A stretch of DNA of 64,000 nucleotides from Thalia democratica (GCA_965202585.1 OZ241829.1:61628001-61692000), one strand, 5' to 3'. Counted from the stretch's first letter, positions 44,909-57,300 are shown. Translations and numbers: made by a program. Notes: generated from the sequence alone by a model not told the origin.

Positions 44909-45571
44909 AGATAGCTGAACTTGAAAGTTTTATTGTATTGGATAACCTGTAAAACTATTATTTACTATTTTCTCATCAAATGCTATACTTTATTTTTATG
45001 GTTTTATCACCTTGAAAAATTTAGATTTTGCATATTAATACACTACTCACAATTTTTCTATATTTGATTAATAAAGGATTATTACTGATGTAACAAGTTT
45101 ACATTTTTGTTTTTAAAAACAGTAGAGTATTTATTAGATAAGAAGGTTGTTATGTTTTGATGTTGTACAAAAGATTAAAAGTTAAAGCCAAGTTATCTAA
45201 AATATTTATTTAAATCACTAAAGTTTCAATAAAATAGTTTTTAAATAAAAAAAATCGGAGTATATACTTTAAGCTTTTAAAAAAAATATGTTTTGAAATG
45301 AAAAGTTTGCTTTTTAAGTTAAAAAAAATTTTACTTACTACATGTTCCAAATGTAATTTTTACTACGTGTTTTTGACTATACTTATTTTCTTGTCTTGTT
45401 AAAGATATACTGTTAATTCGTGTTCAACAGATCACAGATTTTAGTTAGTTTATAAGAAAATGCAATTTATGTATTCTAGTTGCATTAGGTTTTAGGAAAA
45501 CTAAAAAAGTATAGTATATAAAAACATTGTATACGTCAATAGAGTAAAGGTAGTATTTGTCCTTAAGAATT

Positions 45572-46369
45572 TGTAACGCCTCTGGCTTTAAATTAAATTC
45601 AGCAAAAGAGTTTTCTCTAATTAGGGGTTTTTGTATTAATTTGTTAACTTTCTAAATTGCCGCCTTAGTTTTGAATTAGGAGATTTGTGAAAGCTCAAGC
45701 TGAACTTCCTATGTGCTAAATTGTGAGTATTGGTATCAATCTCTTATTTTTTATTTCTGTCTCTTAAATTGAAATTTCTAATAAAGTTAAATTGAAGTTA
45801 ATTTTACTGTGGTTTGCATAAATTTGAATAACTAAACTCTGCTGTTGATAAAATTAAATTGAAGTTAATTGTACTTTTGGTTTGCATAAATTTAAATAAA
45901 TAAACTCTGGTGTTAATAGTTAATTATGTTGAAATTATCTGTAATTTGGTTACATTAAATTGAATAAATAAGCTTTGTTGTGGATAATTAATTAAGAAGC
46001 AAGCTGCTTTTGGTGCTCTTAATAGTCTCTGAAATTTACAAATCAAATTTAATTAATTTAAATGTTTAAATTTATCTAAATATCTAAATATCTAAATATC
46101 TAAAATATCTAAATTTAATAAAATAACTAGTGGGCCACACCTAACTCTTGATATAGCATAATGAGTAATAGATCCAAGCCCCCCAAAAAGGATAGTATGT
46201 TCTCTAAAGAGAACATACATCATACTTTAGACAAGGTCAACAACCCCGAAACTCGCTGTAGCCAACGTAACATAGACAGAGGAATCAACAAAAGGGGTGT
46301 TGACCCACACTCTTCGCGCCGTAGCCAACCTGGTCCATCAGACCAACCACAACCTCCGTGCGAAAGATA
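45572..46369 (+). repeat. 5' LTR (798 bp)
   Basis: Starts TGTAAC; matches 53453-54382; ends immediately before the PBS. Contains ~3 degenerate ~68-bp repeats (~45785-45995) and a (TATCTAAA)n run (46073-46114). Confidence 0.88.
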
Positions 46370-47900
46370 TGGTGACCACAACGTGAGTGAACACGCTTTA
46401 ATTGAGGGTATAGAAATCAGTGCCGAGATTGACATGAACTTAGGGGAGGATCAGTCAGGAAATAACCAAAAGGGGGAAGAGCCCCAGGCAGCGATGGGCA
46501 GTTATCAACAACCTAGAGACCAGCCTAATCCAAGTGGTCTGCCAAGGCAAAGCTACCCACCCCAACAAAATTCTACACCTAGCAACTATGGGCCTCCACC
46601 AAGGGTGACAGGACCACCTAGCAATAGCTCCATTCCTCCAGCAAGAACCTCACCCTTGCCACTCCAACCTAACAGCTTAAACATGGACTGTTCCCTCCAA
46701 AACAGCAGGAGACCCCCTATTCAAGTGCCACCTCAAGAACTGAGTGCTGAAGAGTTAGTACAGGGGATCAAAGATTTGAAGGAACAAATTCGACAAGCTA
46801 AACTTCAAGAGGAATTTCGAAAATTACAAGAAGAATTACATGGATTGAGAAGTCCAAATCCATCCACAAGGACAAATCACGACATCTCAACTCAGGGTAG
46901 ACAGAATACATACATGGATCCTCAAATCCAGGTTCCCCACCAGGTTTCACACACCTCAAGGGCTCAAGACCTACCAAGGAGCCAGGTGACCAGTCGCTCT
47001 CCTCCGAACTATAGAGGATCTTCAGTAGAGCAAGGAGGGTCAGGTGTGAAAGAAAACTTCCAACCATGTGTTCGCAGTCCGTCGTACAACTGCCAACCCC
47101 AGCCAGAAGATAGTAGGTATGACGTCACAGTAGACATAGGTGGCAGTACGCCCCGCACAACAACAAGCCAGCTGTATAAACTAATGCAAAAAAAGGGCGA
47201 TCTTGTCAGTCAAATCGGATACTTAAAGCGCGATACAGAGCAGTTAAAAATAAAGCTAAAACACTTTGAGAAGATCGCCAACGATTATGACATTCGATCG
47301 GATCAAGATCTTTACAGGCTGCTTGAAACATTAGTGACCTGGAAAGAGAGAGAGAGCTACTACCACAGATATAAACCAGAGGATATGAACTACGACACGT
47401 TGAAAGAGTTCCTAATGAGTGGGCAAGAGCGAGTAAGCAACGTGCTACTGGCAAGAGCTGACAGGCACTCCATGTCAAGTAGGGAACTAGGTGATGAGAT
47501 TAATCATTGGTTAGCTGAGTTCAGAAATGAAGGTGTATTAACAAAATTTCTCACAATAAATTTAGCACCTCCTCGTTTAAAAAATCGTTTACGGGAGAAG
47601 CTTCACCTGAAAGACAAAGACTTTCAAATTGCTTGGAAAGTAATGCTCGACACAAATGAGCAAGAGGCAATGGGACGAGCTAGGAATATAAACTATAGCA
47701 ATGCCCCGCGCTCAAATCAAAACAGACCAGCCCAAGCACAGCAGCAATGGACAGCCATTAACAACAATGAATTTATATGCAGAAACCATCAGAGATTTGG
47801 TGTAAATACCCGTTCCTGTTTTGACAGGAGATGTAGTATGCACCATCAAACCATATCTCAGCCTCATTCAAAAAACGAGATCCCAAACTCTCTGCAGTGA
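46161..47900 (+). CDS. gag: Gag (579 aa from first ATG; true start may be a later ATG)
   Basis: Uninterrupted ORF; P/Q/S-rich N-terminal half, capsid-like middle, C-terminal CRNHQRFGVNTRSCFDRRC (C-x2-H-x9-C-x4-C) knuckle. Confidence 0.85.
   Translation: MSNRSKPPKKDSMFSKENIHHTLDKVNNPETRCSQRNIDRGINKRGVDPHSSRRSQPGPSDQPQPPCERYGDHNVSEHALIEGIEISAEIDMNLGEDQSGNNQKGEEPQAAMGSYQQPRDQPNPSGLPRQSYPPQQNSTPSNYGPPPRVTGPPSNSSIPPARTSPLPLQPNSLNMDCSLQNSRRPPIQVPPQELSAEELVQGIKDLKEQIRQAKLQEEFRKLQEELHGLRSPNPSTRTNHDISTQGRQNTYMDPQIQVPHQVSHTSRAQDLPRSQVTSRSPPNYRGSSVEQGGSGVKENFQPCVRSPSYNCQPQPEDSRYDVTVDIGGSTPRTTTSQLYKLMQKKGDLVSQIGYLKRDTEQLKIKLKHFEKIANDYDIRSDQDLYRLLETLVTWKERESYYHRYKPEDMNYDTLKEFLMSGQERVSNVLLARADRHSMSSRELGDEINHWLAEFRNEGVLTKFLTINLAPPRLKNRLREKLHLKDKDFQIAWKVMLDTNEQEAMGRARNINYSNAPRSNQNRPAQAQQQWTAINNNEFICRNHQRFGVNTRSCFDRRCSMHHQTISQPHSKNEIPNSLQ
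46370..46387 (+). promoter_or_regulatory. Primer-binding site, tRNA-Trp type
   Basis: TGGTGACCACAACGTGAG versus the complement of the metazoan tRNA-Trp 3' end TGGTGACCCCGACGTGAT (15/18), directly after the end of LTR homology. Confidence 0.82.
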
Positions 47901-47917
47901 GAGGGAGAGTGATTGGG
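47870..47917 (+). promoter_or_regulatory. -1 programmed ribosomal frameshift signal (gag-pol)
   Basis: Slippery heptamer A AAA AAC (47870-47876) in the gag frame; 5-nt spacer; stem CCCAA-ACTCTC (47882-47892) pairs with GAGAGT-ga-TTGGG (47905-47917); the -1 frame is open from the heptamer into pol. Confidence 0.8.
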
Positions 47918-50900
47918 GCTACACTATCTCACACAAGAGCTGTCCAATTGGTAAATAAAACCGCCCCTCGACAGCAACCCCCATCTCAACCGAGACCAAC
48001 CAGAAATGCCTCAAACTGCACTATAAGTCATCCAGGAAATGAAGTGTCCACACCTTCAAACAAACCAAAGATGACTTTTCATATAAAGCAAACAGCCTCA
48101 CGTAGTGCAGCAGAAACACCTGATGAGAACCAAAGTTCTGAGCAACCGCAGCCAGCATCAACAGGGCCAGCGTCAACGGTCAGCGCCGCCGAAGCCAGCA
48201 CCTCCACGACAAGCGCCAACGATCCGAGCTACCTTAGCCAGCACCACATCGGGCAGTCCCAACGGTCTGCGCAAACACAGCCAGCATCACCAGGGCCAGC
48301 GTCAACGGTCAGCGCCGCCGAAGCCAGCACCTCCACGACAAGCGCCAACGATCCGAGCTACCTTAGCCAGCACCACAATGGGCAGTCCCAACGGTCTGCG
48401 CAAACACAGCCAGCATCACCAGGGCCAACGTCAACGGTCAGCGCCGCCGAAGCCAGCACCTCCACGACAAGCGCCAACGATCCGAGCTACCTTAGCCAGC
48501 ACCACAATGGGCAGTCCCAACGGTCTGCGCAAACACAGCCAGCATCACCAGGGCCATCGTCAACGGTCAGCGCCACCGAAGCCAGCACCTCCACGACAAG
48601 TGCCAACGATCCGAGCTACCTTAGCCAGCACCACAACGGGCAGTCCCAACGGTCAGCGCAACCGCAGCCAGAATCACAACAAAAATCTCTCGACACTACC
48701 AATCACAACAAAGATAAAAGTTTAAAAAAATGGACATTTCAACTAAATAAATTCCCTGCACCCAAACCGAAGAACCTCCCTCAGGGCCTACTATTTGTAG
48801 CGGATTCAAACACAAATGTCATTTTTTTGGTTGACAGCGGATCCGAAATTTCAATCCTACCGAAGGAATTGACTAACGGTATAGACAAATATTTTCCTAA
48901 ACAAATTAGAACCATCCAAGGGTTTGGTAACAAAACAACCCACCCTATTGGTAGCGCGGATGTCGAACTTCAATTGGGGAATTTAAAGCCCATCAACCAC
49001 TCGTTCTGGGTTACTCAAGAATCGCGCCACTTTGGCATTATTGGCATGGACCTGTTAAGAAAGAACGAACTAGCGATCCTGCCATCTACCTCTCAACTAT
49101 GCAAGATGGGGTCAAACGAATCAGCTAGACTGTTCGCACCTGCTGAGTTGCCCACCCCTATAGTCGCTTCAGTCAACCACATCAATCTGGGTGGTAAGAA
49201 TACGACTCCGTTAGAAGAAAAATGCAAAAGACTATTAATGGACTTCCCTGAAATTACCAGGAAGCCAACCTACCACGCGAAGCCAAAACACAACTACGAG
49301 CTCGAGATAATATTGGATAATTACAAGCCTGCCATGGTCAAAGCCAGGAGACCTGGTGGCCGACGAGCAGCCATACAAGACCACTTCAACGACCTCTTAT
49401 ATCGGGGAGTGGTGACTAGAGGAGAGGCTACCGAAGGGGCATCTCCAGTGACTTGCGTACAAAAGAAAGACGGTAGTATGCGCGTGTGTATCGACTATAC
49501 CACGCTGAACAAAGCAACACGGCCGTTAAGCTACCCATTACCTAGAATTGACGAACTTGCCCAGATCATCCCTGGCGGTACGAGATATTTCACAAACTTG
49601 GATTTGAAAGAGGCATACTACAGCCTGCCCCTCGCAGCCAACTCCCAAAAATGTGCTGCAATTATCGTTCATAGTGGTGTTTTCATTCCCAATCGGTGCG
49701 TTTTTGGTTTGAAAAACGCACCGATGAAATTTCAGCAGGTAATGGAGGCCTTGCTGAGGGAATGCGAAGACTTCACTTATGTCTATCTTGACGACATATT
49801 GATATATTCTTACACGGAAGAGGAGCATATCTATCATGTGAGAAAAGTATTTGAAACCCTGTCAAAATACGGACTCTTCTTGAATGTAAAAAAGACTACC
49901 TTTGCTAAGTCAAAATTAGAATTTCTTGGGCACGTGATCGGCGTAGAGGGGATCAATGTACAAGCCTCAAAAGTAGCGGCCATTAAAGAGTACCCCGTAC
50001 CCATTACGCGCAAAGATCTCAAGAGATTTTTGGGGATGGCGAATTACTACCATTCCTTTATTGATGGTTTAGCAGAGATCTTGGCCCCCTTAAGCGCGAT
50101 ATCAGGGGGACCAAAAAAGACCAACCGAACCATCTTGAAGTTAGACGATTCTCATATCAAAGCGTTTGAGGACACAAAGACAGCATTAGCTAACGCAGCC
50201 ACCCTGTCGTTTGAAGACCAGGGTAAACCTCTTATTTTGTTCTCTGATGCCTCGGACACCCACACAGGGGCCTCACTGGAACAACTAAATGATAAAAATG
50301 TGATGGTACCTCTGGCTTTCTTTTCAAGGAGCATTCCGGAAAACAAACGAGCACGTTGTACATACTACAAAGAACTGACAGGTTTAGCTATGGCAATTAA
50401 GCATTTCCACAGTCGAATCTATGGGCGACAACTAATAATAAGATCTGACAACATGGCCCTCTGTAACGCATTAAAGAAGGAGTTGACAGATCAATCCCCC
50501 TACGTGCAACGTCATCTCCAAAGAATACAAGAATACAGCCCGACCGTCATCCATGTTAAAGGCACAGATAATGTGGTGGCAGACGCTCTTAGCAGACCAC
50601 CGCAAGCGGCAACGATGTACATGGGTAGGTACGAAACGGATCCAGACTATGAGGAAATGTGGTACCCCGACTCTGAAGACGAAGTCTCAGAAGAAGAGTC
50701 CATGGAGATAGAGGAGGAGATAATCACACCAGAAAGGATCGACAGGAACTCCCTGGCTCTCTTGCAACAAAGTGAACCTGACTTGATTGAAACAGCCCAA
50801 ACACTGAAAAAAGTAGTTGAGTTTAGCAAGCCCGAGAACATTGCTGAAATTGTAGAGGTCGGAAACAAAAGAGCAATTTTGCCTGAAAGTCTGAGATTAC

Positions 50901-52012
50901 AGGCATTTAATGCGGCCCATCAGGTCCTACATCTAGGAGTGGAAAAATCAATTGATGCGGTAGCCAAAGACTTCTGGTGGCCAACCCTGAGGGCAGATGT
51001 GACCCGTTGGGTCAAAACCTGTCTTCAGTGTCAGGCGGTTAAAGTAATACGCCATAACAGGCCAAAGATCGGGTTCTTTCCCGAAACTACAACTAGGCTC
51101 AGTTTTGTTCATATAGATCTCATAGGACCCATGAACGTAGTCTCAAATAATTGTCGTTATGTTCTTACAATAAAGGACCGTGGAACGGGATTCCTTGTGG
51201 CGACTCCTATTCCTGATAAGAGAGCCATCACAGTGAGGAACGCATTTATGCAGAGTTGGTGTAGCTACTTCGGGACACCTCAGGTGGTTGTGAGTGATAA
51301 TGGAAAAGAATTTGCAAACCAGTTGTTGTCTGATGCCTTCATCCAACTGGGAGTGGACCACCGGTTTGTACCACCGTACAGCCCTCAAAGCAACGGCTTC
51401 ATCGAACGCCAGCACAGAACAATCAACCAAGCTTTGCGAGCAGAAAAAACAAAGACCAATTGGGCACTAAGGTTGCCTATGATTACGGCCACTATCAACA
51501 ACACCTCCATTGAAGGCTCACCATACACTCCCTCTCAATACGCTCTAGGAATGTGTGCGAACCTATCTGGCCAGATTTTTGTTGACAAAAAGGTTGAAGA
51601 TGGGAAGTTTGAGTACAATCATTCGGATACAAGGTTATTCCTCAACATTATGTCTGGTATCACTCGTAAACACCAACGACACAAAGAGAGAAAGGAATAC
51701 TACGAACCCTCCCTATTCCAATGTGAGAAAGTTTGGGTGAAGCGTGCCAACAAAAAGAAATTGTCTACAGTATACCATGGGCCATACAGGGTGCTTCATG
51801 CCTCTGAACACTCAATGTTCATTCAAAAAAACGGTGGGGTAGTAAAAGTGTCAATTAGAAATGTTAAGGCATATTACCCAAGAGAGGAATTGGAAGAGAG
51901 TAAATGTGATGAAATTCCCGAAAACAGATATAATTTAAGGGAAAGGAAAAAAGTGATTAACTGGGATAAAGTAATTAACTGCCAGGAAGAAAGCAGTAGC
52001 GACGAAAATTAG
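47870..52012 (+). CDS. pol: Pol polyprotein (protease, RT, RNase H, integrase with GPY/F), expressed by -1 frameshift
   Basis: FLVDSGSEISILP (PR), RVCIDYTTLN and YVYLDDILIYS (RT), FSDASD / SDNMAL / NVVADALSR (RH), HQVLHLG..CLQC, HIDLIG, SDNGKEF, NGFIERQHRT, HGPYRV (IN). No stop to 52012. Confidence 0.96.
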   Translation, partial: KKRDPKLSAVRGRVIGATLSHTRAVQLVNKTAPRQQPPSQPRPTRNASNCTISHPGNEVSTPSNKPKMTFHIKQTASRSAAETPDENQSSEQPQPASTGPASTVSAAEASTSTTSANDPSYLSQHHIGQSQRSAQTQPASPGPASTVSAAEASTSTTSANDPSYLSQHHNGQSQRSAQTQPASPGPTSTVSAAEASTSTTSANDPSYLSQHHNGQSQRSAQTQPASPGPSSTVSATEASTSTTSANDPSYLSQHHNGQSQRSAQPQPESQQKSLDTTNHNKDKSLKKWTFQLNKFPAPKPKNLPQGLLFVADSNTNVIFLVDSGSEISILPKELTNGIDKYFPKQIRTIQGFGNKTTHPIGSADVELQLGNLKPINHSFWVTQESRHFGIIGMDLLRKNELAILPSTSQLCKMGSNESARLFAPAELPTPIVASVNHINLGGKNTTPLEEKCKRLLMDFPEITRKPTYHAKPKHNYELEIILDNYKPAMVKARRPGGRRAAIQDHFNDLLYRGVVTRGEATEGASPVTCVQKKDGSMRVCIDYTTLNKATRPLSYPLPRIDELAQIIPGGTRYFTNLDLKEAYYSLPLAANSQKCAAIIVHSGVFIPNRCVFGLKNAPMKFQQVMEALLRECEDFTYVYLDDILIYSYTEEEHIYHVRKVFETLSKYGLFLNVKKTTFAKSKLEFLGHVIGVEGINVQASKVAAIKEYPVPITRKDLKRFLGMANYYHSFIDGLAEILAPLSAISGGPKKTNRTILKLDDSHIKAFEDTKTALANAATLSFEDQGKPLILFSDASDTHTGASLEQLNDKNVMVPLAFFSRSIPENKRARCTYYKELTGLAMAIKHFHSRIYGRQLIIRSDNMALCNALKKELTDQSPYVQRHLQRIQEYSPTVIHVKGTDNVVADALSRPPQAATMYMGRYETDPDYEEMWYPDSEDEVSEEESMEIEEEIITPERIDRNSLALLQQSEPDLIETAQTLKKVVEFSKPENIAEIVEVGNKRAILPESLRLQAFNAAHQVLHLGVEKSIDAVAKDFWWPTLRADVTRWVKTCLQCQAVKVIRHNRPKIGFFPETTTRLSFVHIDLIGPMNVVSNNCRYVLTIKDRGTGFLVATPIPDKRAITVRNAFMQSWCSYFGTPQVVVSDNGKEFANQLLSDAFIQLGVDHRFVPPYSPQSNGFIERQHRTINQALRAEKTKTNWALRLPMITATINNTSIEGSPYTPSQYALGMCANLSGQIFVDKKVEDGKFEYNHSDTRLFLNIMSGITRKHQRHKERKEYYEPSLFQCEKVWVKRANKKKLSTVYHGPYRVLHASEHSMFIQKNGGVVKVSIRNVKAYYPREELEESKCDEIPENRYNLRERKKVINWDKVINCQEESSSDEN
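48149..48664 (+). repeat. Four tandem 129-bp (43-aa) repeats in the pre-protease part of pol
   Basis: Units begin 48149, 48278, 48407, 48536; QPASPGPASTVSAAEASTSTTSANDPSYLSQHHNGQSQRSAQT. Confidence 0.95.
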
Positions 52013-52621
52013 GAAATTACAAAACTGGTTGACAACTGCTACAATGGGGAACCGTTGGTTCTGATTGGTAAACCCCAAGATTTCTTTCTTTTTTTTTTTG
52101 TACAAGCATAGAAAGATATTTGGTACTTTTTAGATGGATACTACTTAAGGGCTTATTCAAATAAGCAACATTTGATTTTCACTGATTATTTTGTACAACA
52201 CCTAGAAGCTGCTTGCATTTTTTATATTATTGTTAAATGACTTAACTTTAAGAATTTTTTTAATTTTAAAATTTATGGGGTTTTTGATTTTATATTTATT
52301 TGTACAACCATTAAAAATTGGTATCTTATAGACATGTATTTTTTTTTGTAATTATCTTAGCTAAAATAGGTACTGTGTGATGTTTTATATAAAAATCTAA
52401 AATGTTCTATATTGCATTGTTTTTTGGTTGTCTCCTGTTTAGCACTGGGAAAGCTTGCCAAGCAAATTGTAAAAATCATGGCTCAGTAACTTTCACTCAT
52501 CTAGTTTGGTGGGGTAAGTCGAACTGCCACACCCCAGAGACCTCAGAATGAACCATTCTAATAAGAACAAGCTGCCACTACGTACAGCAGAATGGTAGTG
52601 ACGATGTCGATTCGTCTGGAA

Positions 52622-52900
52622 ATGCATACATGGCAGCACATCTTCGAATCCCATGGGGGCAATGCCAACCCGTCTGCTGATGATGTCAAGCAGACCCTCA
52701 AATCCGTTGGCGTTGATGACGATGGTGAACAACGCCAGGTCGCCAGCGATTAATTCGCGGAGAAGGACGTCAGTGGAGCCAAACTTCCCGCCAGAGTTCC
52801 GGGAGAACCACTACAAGAAGAGCGGCCGCAGCTGGAGCAACTAGAGAAGAGGAGGAGAAGGCGAGTAAGAAGAGGCCGAGCCTCAACCTCCAGTGTAAGA
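52622..52900 (+). pseudogene. RPLP2: Decayed, intronless copy of 60S acidic ribosomal protein P2 inside the retrotransposon
   Basis: ATG-ca-YMAAHL, then GGNANPSADDVKQTLKSVGVDDDGEQRQVASD*FAEKDV, then GAKLPARVPG, then shifted-frame AAAAGATREEEEK; matches the P2 consensus MxYxAAYLL..GGNxxPSAxDIKxILxSVG...VISELxGKDI...GxxKLASVP...AAAA...EEKKEE. In-frame TAA 52751-52753 and several indels. Confidence 0.82.
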
Positions 52901-53440
52901 GTAAGGAACCATCATCATGAACGGTAAACATTGACTTTTAAACAAACTTTTGACTCATGATTGTAATTAGGAATTTGTAAATTTATATTCAAAAAAAGTC
53001 TTTTCTTTACAATTTCTTTAGAATTTCTGTTTTATTTTGTTAAAAAAAGCATTTTTACCACACTTAAAAAGTGTCTTAAGCATTTACTACATTTAAATAC
53101 TTATAGTTTTAATTTTACTTTAAAAATAGCTAGTAGAGTGTTTAAATCCAGATTTTGAATTAGCTCAAAAATGTTGTTATATGCAAGTACCTTTTAGCAC
53201 ATAAAGTTGATGATCATAAGTATCTCTTAAAATATTTTTTATGATTATTACATGTAAATTACAAAAAGAAAGTTATAAACTTATGTTGCATGCTTATATA
53301 TCTCTAAGTTGAGTGCTTTAGTGTATAATGGTTTTCACCTGGACTATATTTAAAGTTTTTTTCAGTTTAACAAACGTTTAACACCTTAAAACTAATATTT
53401 ATCTAAAAAAACCTAAGTTAAAATTCTAAAAATGTTTAAT

Positions 53441-53452
53441 AAGAGGGGAAAA
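53441..53452 (+). promoter_or_regulatory. Polypurine tract
   Basis: AAGAGGGGAAAA immediately before the 3' LTR TGTAAC. Confidence 0.85.
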
Positions 53453-54382
53453 TGTAACGCCTCTGGCTTTAAATTAAATTCAGCAAAAGAGTTTTCTCTA
53501 ATTAGGGGTTTTTTGTATTAATTTGTTAACTTTCTAAATTGCCGCCTTAGTTTTGAATTAGGAGATTTGTGAAAGCTCAAGCTGAACTTCCTATGTGCTA
53601 AATTGTGAGTATTGGTATCAGTCTCTTATTTTTTATTTCTGTCTCTTAAATTGAAATTTCTAATAAAGTTAAATTGAAGTTAATTTTACTGTGGTTTGCA
53701 TAAATTTGAATAACTAAACTCTGCTGTTGATAAAATTAAATTGAAGTTAATTGTACTTTTGGTTTGCATAAATTTAAATAAATAAACTCTGGTGTTAATA
53801 GTTAATTATGTTGAAATTATCTGTAATTTGGTTACGTTAAATTGAATAAATAAGCTTTGTTGTGGATAATTAATTAAGAAGCAAGCTGCTTTTGGTGCTC
53901 TTAATCAGACATGTTAAAAAGCTCTGCTTTGTTTACTCAAGCGTGAAATTACTAACTTAAAACAAACCAAAAATAAAACACTTCATTGCTGAATTACCAT
54001 AGTAACTTTTAGCATTTTAACATCTCTGCTCTTAATAGTCTCTGAAATTTACAAATCAAATTTAATTAATTTAAATGTTTAAATTTATCTAAATATCTAA
54101 ATATCTAAATATCTAAAATATCTAAATTTAATAAAATAACTAGTGGGCCACACCTAACTCTTGATATAGCATAATGAGTAATAGATCCAAGCCCCCCAAA
54201 AAGGATAGTATGTTCTCTAAAGAGAACATACATCATACTTTAGACAAGGTCAACAACCCCGAAACTCGCTGTAGCCAACGTAACATAGACAGAGGAATCA
54301 ACAAAAGGGGTGTTGACCCACACTCTTCGCGCCGTAGCCAACCTGGTCCATCAGACCAACCACAAGCAACGCGTGAAAGATA
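53453..54382 (+). repeat. 3' LTR (930 bp including a MITE insertion)
   Basis: Differences from the 5' LTR seen by eye: one extra T, two substitutions, a 131-bp MITE+TSD insertion, and a 9-nt mismatch patch near the end. Confidence 0.88.
53906..54028. mobile_element. 123-bp hAT-like MITE inserted in the 3' LTR
   Basis: TIRs CAGACATGTTAAAAAGCT / AGCATTTTAACATCTCTG (16/18); perfect 8-bp TSD CTCTTAAT (53898-53905, 54029-54036); empty site in the 5' LTR. Confidence 0.9.
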
Positions 54383-57300
54383 AATTTAATTTAATTTATT
54401 TTTTAGTACATACTAACTGGCTCAAATTAAACTTTGAATAAGCATTAACGTAGACCGTTTAAAAGCTTGTCGAACGTTTTCTAATGTACTATACATAATT
54501 TGGTATATTTAAGTTTTAAAAAACCATTTTAAAGATATACACATTACAAATCTACAGTTTTATAGACGCTTTTTCGACTTTTCATCAGTCATTATCAATA
54601 ATAAAACTGTGTAAAATAACTAAAAATTAGTGTTAAACAACTAAGTAAATAAGAAAAACAAGTAGTAAGATACATATTAACACTTATATATTAAAATTGT
54701 CAGCTCCAGTAAAATTACCGGTTACATAAACATTGATACATGGTAAAAAAAATATATACAACTAATCTAAAATTCTTAATGTGAGGGTAATACCCGGTTT
54801 AGTTAATTGTCTGTTTAAAATTGGATTATAACGTTTATTTAAAATGGCTTCAGTGATCAGAGTTTCAAGTTTATTTCTACATTCTTTTAAAATACCAAAA
54901 TATTTAACAGTTTTTTAAAAATTGGTATTTTAAAACAGTTATTTGAATCTTATTACTTAATTTTTCTTTTATATTTAGTTGTTTAACACTAATTCTTACT
55001 TATTTTACACAGTTTTATTATTGATTATGACTGATGAAAAGTCAGTCGAAACGGCGTCTAATAAACTATAAATTTGTAATGTGCATCTCTTTAAAATGGT
55101 TTTAATGAACTATGTTTGAATGTTTATACCTCTGTTTTAGCGGCGTCTTTGCAAAAATTTAACAGTTAATCAATAGTAGAGCATTAGTAATAACTAACTA
55201 CTAAACTAAGATTATAATTGTAAGGTTTTGTCACAAAAACGTTTTTATTACCGTTTTTTTTAAGTTATGTTTCAAGTTTTCTAATTGCATATATAATGCA
55301 GCGGGTGAGGTATGCAACAAAGACTAAAAAGAACAGCATGAAAAAAAAATTTAGTAACGAGCCTAAGAGTCTGAATAGTGTCTTAATAATAAAAATTTTA
55401 TAGCTTTTTTAACTTTTTGATTTTTTTAATTTTTTAGGCACAGTATTACATGAATGCCATCCTAACTAATATGTAGCATATATGTTTAGATGTTATTAAC
55501 TGAATAAGCTTAATTTTTTTTAGGATTACGAAGACGTAGAGATAAAAGGCTTTAATGTATATCAATAACCTAGTTGAGTTAAAATCCTGAGAGTTGTTAA
55601 ATTTATATAGAATACTTTTAGATTGTTTTATATTATATTCTAACAAACCTTTTTCAGCAAGATATTTTATGAAAAATATATTTAACGACTAAAATGTAAA
55701 AAATCATTCTCTATATGTTTTTTATTCTGCATTTAGTAAATAAAGCTTTGCTTAGGTATCTTAAAATATCAAAAACTATTTATAATTAAAATATTCAATA
55801 CACCTTTTAATTTTGTTAACTAAAACAGACCCTTTTTTTAGTTGTGAATTGTACTTGTAAAATGAAAGAAAAAGAAAATCTAGTAGGGATAAACCAATCG
55901 GTAAAACAACTTACATTCAACAGAACTTTGATAGCAAAAACATTTTCAAAGACCTTCTTGTTTTAGCGTTGAAATAAAAAACAAAATAATAAAAACCTAT
56001 ACGTTTTAGAACTGAACTAAAGGAAGATACATTTATAACGGCTTTGTTTTAAAAACAAACTCATAAGAGCTGTGGCAAAGTTTCTATCCATTGGTATGAT
56101 TACAATTTCAGATAAAAGTAAACACTTTAAAAGTTTTTTTTAATATCAAGCTGATCAATATTTCATTGAACTAACTTGTTTGAAATGATGTATAAGTAAA
56201 AAACATTTATTTATTTTTTGTTTAAATTTTCCTTTCTTATAATTAGACATTTTATATTTTTTATACTGACAACTTTTATAAAAAACTTTAGACATGTTTT
56301 ACTTTAACAAGTTTTGATATTTGTTTTTCTAATTAGTTTTTTTTTAGTATATTAATGAACATAAAATTTGTTACTTCTACTAATACCATGAAAATAAAAA
56401 AATTTAAATGCAAACATACCAAAAGTAAATAGCACGAACGCATTAAGTGTTAATAACTCTGAACAAAGCTTTTTTTCTGTTTTTAATTTTGTTTTTAACA
56501 ATGCTTACCTGAAGATGACTTGAACGGTATAGATAAGTTTTTTAAAGTTAATAATTTATGGATGAGTTTGTAAAAATATGATAACTTTTTATTTGTAACT
56601 TTTAAATGTATAAAGTGCTTTATTAAAATAATTAAAAATTATCTATTTTTGTTTTGCCTTGTTTATTTATCAATGGTAAAAACGTACCTTTTGTTTTTGT
56701 AAGTTAATATTTGTTACTTTGTAGAGTTAAACTATCGTAAACCGAACTTTATATTCATTTAAAATGGTTGATTTAATCTAAATTAATTTTTTTTTATTAG
56801 TTATTAAAAAAGTTTATCAGCTGAAAATAATATGCAGGCTACCAATTTTTCGCTTTGCGGGCTGTAATTTGCTTAACTCTGCTCTATATAAAACTATAAT
56901 GAACTTGAAAAAAAACTTATATGCTCTAATGCTCGTAATAAACTAACATGTCTACGAATAATTAAGAAAATTATGTATGTTGTTCATTAGAAAAAAACAC
57001 TAACTAAAAGTATTTATTTAAAAAAAAAGTTGTTTTTTTTCTAAACTATAATGATTTACTTTGATTTCGTTCATAAAACAAGTATAGTTACTATACTATG
57101 GATTTAAATATTGAAGATTGTCCTGTGTAGTTTGAGTAATAATAACTTTTAAAAATTGCATTTTTTATATAGTATTTTTTTTGAAAATCTAAATAAACAA
57201 AAATGCTTTAAGTAAAGTTACTAAAAATTTAAAGTTCTGTTACTTTAATAATAAGATTAGTATGAATGATTTTATATCTTAAGTAGAGTCAAAGCCTTTA

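Follow-up and report, generated by a model that had tools for sequence, protein, structure and literature searches.

The window analysed here, a stretch of 64,000 nucleotides (nt) from Thalia democratica (GCA_965202585.1 OZ241829.1:61628001-61692000), contains a Ty3/gypsy (Metaviridae-type) long terminal repeat (LTR) retrotransposon that carries, between its pol gene and its polypurine tract (PPT), a decayed copy of a host mRNA for the ribosomal stalk protein P2. The copy is of host origin and follows the spliced P2a mRNA to its 3' end; it has a single origin in three element lineages, is present in high copy number, and shows near-neutral evolution. Taken together, these data suggest that the segment is probably an LTR-mediated retrocopy of the host P2a mRNA, and that it travels as a neutral passenger of an autonomous element. 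An earlier reading made from the sequence alone, without database searches (the sequence-only reading), had proposed an intronless, sense-oriented P2 copy between pol and the PPT, and the proposal was borne out by an alignment that crosses both exon junctions of the spliced mRNA and by structural database matches to P2 chains only. Positions are counted from the first letter of the window, and the features are collected in Table 1.

An island of 50-56% GC at 52430-52930 stands within a non-coding stretch of 22-26% GC. The P2-derived segment occupies 52619-52990 on the sense strand and is intronless; its distance from the pol stop (52012) on the 5' side is 610 nt, and from the PPT on the 3' side 450 nt. 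When the island is read in the open frame it gives MVVTMSIRLEMHTWQHIFESHGGNANPSADDVKQTLKSVGVDDDGEQRQVASD up to a stop codon, then a hinge-like piece, and then an Arg-rich tail. The piece of 43 amino acids (aa) encoded at 52622-52750 was compared with the 177,635 distinct sequences of our PDB search set and matched 60S acidic ribosomal protein P2 chains only (five matches, best E 1.2e-4). At the nucleotide level, the segment and the first coding exon of the host P2a gene share 79% identity over 132 nt (blastn E 2e-26, in a small database; tblastx E 7e-11). The Pfam family Ribosomal_60s gave nothing within E 10 when it was searched against the pieces of the island, and a genome-wide scan with PF00428 did not pick up the element copies. 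Because the PF00428 model is dominated by the C-terminal tail, the missing Pfam match is no argument against P2 homology; the profile search that the sequence-only reading had proposed as a check was too insensitive, and the homology is real by blastn, tblastx and the PDB matches.

The alignment of the segment to the spliced P2a mRNA starts at GAAATGC (52619) and spans both exon junctions, A/B at about 52775/52776 and B/C at about 52849/52850, without introns. Of its 271 ungapped columns 74% are identical, and it has six indels. Similarity to the 3' untranslated region (UTR) of the host mRNA continues to 52989, and two P2 pseudogenes in the host genome, L039 and L043, end at the same ...ATTTATATTA as the P2 copy does. 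Two independent pseudogenes that stop at an identical point indicate that this point is the 3' end of the mRNA. There the copy passes into a run of A residues, seven in the window and nine in the sister lineage L087. The spliced junctions, the mRNA 3' end and the A run together show that the template was a mature, spliced and polyadenylated mRNA. The sequence-only reading had placed the P2 copy at 52592-52960; the P2 identity stood, the start methionine did not, since 52592 is an upstream in-frame ATG and the true start is at 52622, and the end lies further on, at 52989 plus the seven A residues. The LFD-like remnant CTTTTGAC that it had noticed at 52947 could not be placed reliably in the alignment.

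The stalk-protein genes were located by a family scan of the 802-Mb host genome. The P2a gene (locus L037, G000:C5:34.437 Mb) has three coding exons, with introns of ~180 and ~600 nt, and encodes a normal P2 of 108 aa that ends in MGFDLFG. Over the same columns the segment is 71% identical to P2a and 53% to the paralogue P2b (C5:3.129 Mb), suggesting that the donor was on the P2a branch, so that the comparison with the host locus that the sequence-only reading had recommended did identify a donor. The homology to P2a spans the N-terminal dimerisation domain, the hinge, the tail and the 3' UTR, at both the nucleotide and the peptide level. Unlike P2a, the copy lacks introns and has a premature TAA, six indels and an out-of-frame tail in which MGFDLFG is unrecognisable. 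The genomic retro-pseudogenes of P2, L039 (G000:C7:43.196 Mb) and L043 (G000:C10:22.358 Mb), are 89% and 93% identical to the mRNA; both are without a poly(A) tail, and L043 is 5'-truncated.

The differences between the segment and the P2a mRNA fall on codon positions 1, 2 and 3 in the numbers 24, 18 and 29, a spread that points to a pseudogene and not to a selected coding copy. An uninterrupted P2 open reading frame (ORF) of ~110 aa is not present: nearly all copies have the TAA at 52751, and the frame changes after the hinge. The frame at 52592-52927 does hold, as had been described from the sequence, a single internal TAA (52751-52753) in 112 codons. The acidic tail with its terminal MGFDLFG was not recognisable in the window, in L087 or in L083, another relative, and in the open frame the tail is Arg-rich. 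With no full ORF, no factor-binding motif and no purifying selection (see below), the P2 copy does not qualify as a functional stalk protein.

The element that surrounds the segment has its LTR pair, a short target duplication, a primer-binding-site-like (PBS-like) sequence and the PPT all present, and its gag and pol frames are both open. Its two LTRs are ~99% identical overall (self-blastn: 45572-46023 with 53453-53905 at 99.3%, and 46014-46369 with 54027-54382 at 98.6%) and are flanked by a 4-bp duplication, AATT, in agreement with the earlier description of an otherwise intact and young element. The order of domains in pol is protease (PR; Pfam aa 307-386), reverse transcriptase (RT; 521-681), RNase H (750-880) and integrase (IN; 996-1189), with Pfam scores of 1.6e-32 for RVT_1, 8e-22 for RT_RNaseH_2, 1.5e-16 for Integrase_H2C2, 9e-11 for rve and 1.7e-5 for Asp_protease_2. 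Within the LTR pair the P2 segment has element sequence on both sides, an AT-rich spacer (spacer 1) and pol on its 5' side and a second spacer (spacer 2), the PPT and the 3' LTR on its 3' side, and the same flanks surround the P2 copy in ~140 copies of the element.

A protein-level search of the genome with the host exon found 145 places, namely two host genes, one pseudogene and ~142 element-borne copies, and a 401-nt segment had at least 40 genome matches at 98-100% identity. In 28 of the 30 best-matching copies position 49358 is joined to 52093 (49358^52093), with RT, RNase H and IN deleted. Many copies also lack 46990-47852, the end of gag (junction 46989/47853). These deletion junctions were read in copies L002-L030 and L054-L078. 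Eleven other full-length copies were compared, and in 9 of them the P2 copy is present with the expected spacing from pol. The genome also has 82-91% subfamilies of the element, outside the set of aligned copies. The P2 cargo is thus a feature of the autonomous element and of its far more numerous non-autonomous deletion offspring, and the derivatives without the RT-to-IN region must rely on mobilisation in trans. As in secondary retroposition, the junctions and lesions are identical in many copies. The copies differ among themselves by ~1-2%, whereas the P2 copy differs from the host mRNA by 26% substitutions plus indels. That the capture predates this insertion and has been carried through many replication cycles, as the sequence-only reading held, is supported by this difference and by the same lesions in ~140 copies and two sister lineages. 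The segment is also not confined to one copy with its own target duplication and poly(A) tail, the finding that would have pointed to a later processed pseudogene: it occurs in ~140 copies, with no duplication in the ancestral, L087-like arrangement and an A run of only seven to nine. A variant with a 27-nt deletion (52748-52774), which takes out the TAA and leaves the frame open for ~99 codons, was read in identical form from one sequenced copy on chromosome C1 and one on C4, and matches shortened in the same way occur at about five further loci; its presence at several loci suggests that the variant has transposed or has spread by recombination.

A pol search of marine metagenome assemblies gave graded relatives of the element; the contigs are assemblies and may be composites, although L083 and L085 agree with each other. 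L087 (85% identical in pol aa, synonymous divergence dS 0.57) carries the island too, complete with the TAA, the 15-nt deletion and the 1-nt deletions, and it keeps the host state at several sites where the window has changed. L083 and L085 (80% in pol nt, from two Tara samples) have a more eroded P2 copy, which has the derived GGGGG and AATGCC states and the tail insertions in common with the other cargo-bearing lineages, and in L083 ~80-95 nt of the P2 part are lost. In both of them a decayed retrocopy of a histone H2B mRNA is joined directly upstream of the P2 remains (L083:6620-6990; Pfam Histone 7.5e-6, PDB H2B 3e-18), and the H2B of this lineage is 79-85% identical to the H2B genes of the host's histone arrays. 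An L083-type element was not detected in the host genome. The tandem histone arrays of the host lie at G000:C7:14.67-14.91 Mb, C7:31.36-31.41 Mb and C8:46.19-47.04 Mb, with periods of ~8.2 kb and ~7.2 kb.

More distant relatives carry no cargo. L081 (71% pol identity) and L082 (61%, read from LTR to LTR) have only an AT-rich spacer after pol. Relatives at 52-61% pol identity have a third reading frame, ORF3, of 570-600 aa (L093:6266-8068, L090:639-2360, L091:1483-3201, L082:709-2484), which has a signal-like start, a C-terminal membrane span, and weak but consistent matches to the rhabdovirus G fusion domain and to herpes gB, so that it looks like a class III fusion-type env. A remnant of ORF3 was not detectable in the window element or in the other cargo-bearing lineages. 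The lesions common to the window family, L087 and L083/L085 argue for one old capture of P2. These comparisons indicate that the P2 mRNA was captured once, after the loss of env, into a spacer at the former env position, that it was inherited by at least three lineages, and that H2B was added later in one of them. Still more distant pol relatives, P0043 and P0045 (ENA proteins, 36% identical to pol), have a cold-shock domain (PF00313) in the same predicted protein.

Selection on the copy was examined at the level of the frame and at the level of rates. In the 48 copies sampled for comparison of the frame and the ATG, the ATG at 52592 reads ATA in more than half, and the frame is shifted, by +1 or otherwise, in at least 8 of the 48. 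Within the 53-codon frame, all distinct variants among the copies alter the protein, and between the window and L087 the nonsynonymous and synonymous divergences of a 49-codon frame (dN/dS) are 0.126/0.163, a ratio of about 0.8; purifying selection on the P2 protein was not seen in these comparisons. Of the two things the sequence-only reading had wanted checked across the family, presence therefore holds (~142 copies) and conservation of the frame does not, given the frameshifts.

The divergence of the island from L087 is 0.106, compared with 0.107-0.121 for spacer 1 and 0.29-0.38 for spacer 2 beyond ~53100, and for pol overall the 4-fold divergence is 0.29 and dS is 0.57. An initial impression that the island evolves 3-5-fold more slowly than pol dS was rejected, since it is largely explained by a change-point in pol at ~50420: in windows along pol, third-position and 4-fold divergence is ~0.3-0.5 up to ~50420 and ~0.17 after it. 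The abrupt drop suggests a recombinant 3' block, cargo included, that would be shared more recently by both lineages. The 4-fold divergence of the adjoining pol block is 0.166, so the island is 0.6 times as diverged as the 4-fold sites in the same block, and it is no more conserved than spacer 1. The GC content of the island (54%) is compatible with that of the 4-fold sites of the element's pol (GC4 0.47). Two further candidate signs of selection were dropped. Retention of GC (21 AT-to-GC against 14 GC-to-AT changes on the element lineage, a balance hardly to be expected were the spacers at equilibrium) has to be judged against the pol GC4 of 0.47 and not against the spacers with 22% GC, and low diversity of the island among the 30 best P2 matches came from a sample picked by P2 similarity in which deletion forms were mixed. 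These comparisons suggest that the P2 island evolves near-neutrally, with weak constraint at the nucleic-acid level possible.

How could the mRNA have entered the element? The most likely route, and one we consider plausible, is template switching. A mature, spliced and polyadenylated P2a mRNA would have been reverse-transcribed into an autonomous Ty3/gypsy element: inside the particle, RT would have switched template from the A/T-rich 3' spacer to the poly(A) tail of the mRNA, and would have switched back near the mRNA 5' end, so that the cargo settled in the non-coding stretch between pol and the PPT. As gag, pol, the PBS, the PPT and both LTRs were left untouched, the chimera stayed mobile. 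The P2 reading frame would then have been lost early, and the copy would have been replicated passively thereafter, with the autonomous element and with RT-to-IN deletion derivatives mobilised in trans. The 3' junction of the P2 copy, an A run within an A/T-rich spacer, is compatible with template switching. Examples of such LTR-mediated retroposition, multi-gene chimeras and secondary retroposition among them, are known from flies, mosquito, fish, chicken and mammals (Tan et al. 2016, Genome Res, PMC5131818).

A different route of entry would be that the RT of a long interspersed nuclear element (LINE) put a processed P2 pseudogene into a genomic copy of the element, which then became the master of the family. 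In favour of this, the P2 copy extends precisely to the 3' end of the mRNA, an A run comes next (A7 for the window and A9 for L087), and ordinary P2 retro-pseudogenes, L039 and L043, do exist in the host genome. The A run is very short, however, and in the ancestral, L087-like arrangement there is no target-site duplication around the island; one candidate pair, GTCTCCTGTTTA and GTCTTTTCTTTA (GTCT..TTTA), was rejected, because in L087 its left copy is 219 nt away from the island. The host P2 pseudogenes are themselves without poly(A), and the later, seamless joining of H2B to the P2 copy in the sister lineage is the product expected of repeated template switching. An mRNA complete to its 3' end with only A7-A9, no target duplication and a seamlessly joined H2B appears to fit template switching better than a LINE, and we regard the LINE route as unlikely.

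Several observations nevertheless weigh against a passive retrocopy made by template switching. No pre-capture or cargo-free orthologous spacer was found that could show microsimilarity at the junction, the hallmark of template switching. The alignments do not define the 5' junction, and the GC-richer sequence of ~140-160 nt upstream of the P2 copy matched no source. The island and spacer 1 diverge more slowly than the neighbouring 4-fold sites (59/557 against 26/157, Fisher p=0.05). Copies chosen by similarity to the N-terminal part of pol, and hence without bias towards P2, have a diversity of 1.2% in the P2 part and ~2.1% in the flanks, a small difference that would allow for weak constraint. 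The cargo survives in three lineages and in streamlined deletion derivatives. Finally, the evidence for transcription is indirect: metatranscriptome contigs contain 8-24% of the sampled words of the stretch, which is also found in runs labelled as marine metagenomes and in four coded organisms.

Some of these points are what would be expected if the GC-rich island of host origin were kept for a benefit at the nucleic-acid level, such as RNA stability, export, packaging or 3'-end formation, and not for its protein. Three lineages and the deletion derivatives have kept the island, which diverges little relative to neighbouring 4-fold sites and is about half as diverse among copies as the flanks, and a sister lineage added a second host mRNA at the same spot without losing the first. 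We consider this improbable all the same. Spacer 1 is as conserved as the island, so that the slow block looks like a recombination tract that starts in pol at ~50420. Folding of the island was unremarkable against shuffles (minimum free energy z-score -1.26), and the island had no Rfam match. L083 has lost ~80-95 nt of the P2 part, and the 27-nt deletion inside the segment occurs at loci on at least two chromosomes. The relatives at 61-71% pol identity, which lack cargo, have a long spacer as well. The cis-acting RNA role that the sequence-only reading had suggested is not supported by these results. A broader form of the idea is that the pol-PPT stretch of the env-less sub-clade is a reusable slot into which abundant host mRNAs are captured serially (P2, then H2B), where an island of normal GC might be under weak selection for RNA stability, export, packaging or a host-like appearance; this, too, we hold to be doubtful.

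The sequence-only reading had also offered two functions that found little in their favour. The ~140 copies might feed a small-RNA pathway that cross-targets the host P2 mRNA: many copies are in sense orientation, antisense read-through would yield P2-like small RNAs, and identity reaches 79% over 132 nt. The longest exact match of the island to the host P2 mRNA is 17 nt, however, and P2 is an essential, highly expressed gene, so that such targeting is very unlikely. Least probable of all is a stalk decoy in the form of a translated P2 N-terminal peptide of 43-53 aa, with effects on elongation or frameshifting. In the window family and L087 a 43-53-codon open frame does span most of the P2 dimerisation domain, and the 27-nt-deletion variant extends that frame. 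However, no way of translating a frame 610 nt beyond the pol stop is evident, the acidic tail and terminal factor-binding motif are destroyed in all lineages, and the upstream ATG, the frameshifts, the copy variants and the dN/dS described above all speak against it.

We return to the LTR-mediated retrocopy as the preferred reading and describe the remaining features of the element with Table 1.

Table 1. Features of the P2-carrying retrotransposon in the 64,000-nt window.
Feature	Position	Strand	Basis
Target-site duplication AATT	45568..45571 (5' side), partner 54383-54386	.	Read directly from sequence
5' LTR, 798 bp, TGTAAC...AAGATA	45572..46369	+	Self-blastn
Primer-binding-site-like TGGTGACCACAACG, directly 3' of 5' LTR	46370..46383	+	Position and TGG start alone
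gag open frame, 579 aa, opening inside LTR	46161..47900	+	Homologous ORFs precede pol in relatives
pol, 1371 aa, -1 frame relative to gag; protease, RT, RNase H, integrase	47897..52012	+	Pfam
AT-rich spacer 1, 26% GC	52013..52441	+	Composition, alignment to L087
GC-richer upstream stretch, 45% GC, common to sister lineages	52442..52601	+	Alignment
Candidate mRNA 5' leader remnant: spliced-leader-like CGATGTCGATTCGTCT, then GG	52602..52618	+	Weak local match
Decayed P2 coding-region copy; start codon 52622, TAA 52751-52753, 15-nt deletion after 52770	52619..52930	+	Alignment
P2 3' UTR copy, ending ...AAATTTATATT(C) at 52980-52990, then A7 at 52991-52997	52931..52997	+	Host pseudogenes L039, L043
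AT-rich spacer 2, 22% GC	52998..53440	+	Composition, sister-lineage alignment
Polypurine tract AAGAGGGGAAAA, abutting 3' LTR	53441..53452	+	Sequence
3' LTR	53453..54382	+	Self-blastn

On the 5' side of the P2 copy, the stretch at 52442..52601 has a divergence of p=0.12 from L087, and its start is also homologous in L083; it had no Pfam match and resembled neither the host P2 locus nor the flank of L039. Between it and the P2 copy, 52602-52617 matches the 3' part of the Oikopleura dioica spliced leader (SL; PMC6883708) at 15 of 16 positions with one gap, a score that 5 of ~880 windows of the element reach equally. The independent pseudogene L039 has GTCTGA before AAATG, where the host gene itself has an acceptor AG. 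The O. dioica SL 25-mer had no match in the genome within 3 mismatches, and a guessed SL-donor pattern was no commoner in the genome than a control. It is possible that 52602-52618 is a remnant of a spliced leader, and the match that suggests it is weak.

The sequence after the 5' LTR begins with the PBS-like TGGTGACC... The gag frame starts within the 5' LTR and crosses the PBS (46014-46369 / 46161 onward). Because it opens inside the 5' LTR, the same sequence is also present in the 3' LTR. The gag frame of the window element had no Pfam match. In the N-terminal part of pol, at 48130-48774, there is a tandem repeat with a period of 129 nt (43-nt sub-units), the unit number of which varies between copies. 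Spacer 1 of window-type copies lacks 219 nt at 52441/52442 that are present in L087 and in at least 32 copies in the genome. The first ~130 nt of spacer 2 are conserved in the sister lineages and the remainder diverges fast. A 122-bp insert at 53906-54026, flanked by a 9-bp direct repeat GCTCTTAAT, is present in the 3' LTR of the window copy only and looks like a small element that inserted after integration.

The topology of the element resembles that of Rous sarcoma virus, in which the cargo lies between the last viral gene and the 3' LTR and is an expressed and selected protein. Here, too, host cDNA stands after the last element gene and before the PPT and 3' LTR, and the replication functions are untouched; unlike the viral cargo, the P2 cargo is a frameshifted pseudogene with no sign of protein expression. 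The closest parallel is the LTR-mediated retroposition described in PMC5131818, with an intronless sense copy of a host mRNA inside an LTR element, recopied with the element, and with multi-gene cargo (here H2B plus P2). Most cases in that study are young chimeras with one locus or a few, each a 'discontinuous' non-autonomous element that the retrocopy interrupts. In the present case gag, pol, the PBS and the PPT are intact, the cargo sits in a non-coding slot, there are ~140 copies, and sublineages have split while still carrying P2. Plant LTR retrotransposons commonly carry gene fragments, and in the maize survey no element had fragments of more than one gene (Baucom et al. 2009, PMC2774510). 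Maize Bs1 is without pol and has 1-5 copies (summarised in PMC5131818); in contrast, the present carrier is an autonomous element of a marine animal, with a copy number higher by two orders of magnitude.

On present evidence this is a new instance of a known process, revealing no new mechanism and no function for the captured stalk protein; the absence of any function for the passenger is what we infer from the tests above. The added interest of the case lies in its autonomous carrier, its copy number and the serial capture in the sister lineage, where a second host mRNA was taken up at the same slot to give the H2B-plus-P2 cargo. It is a clean, datable case of host-mRNA capture by an LTR element in a marine invertebrate, in which the carrier stayed autonomous and became highly successful. 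One capture seeded ~140 P2-like fragments in the genome, which will confuse the annotation of ribosomal-protein genes and pseudogenes, and the common lesions of these fragments provide a marker for tracing the splits and recombination of the element lineages.

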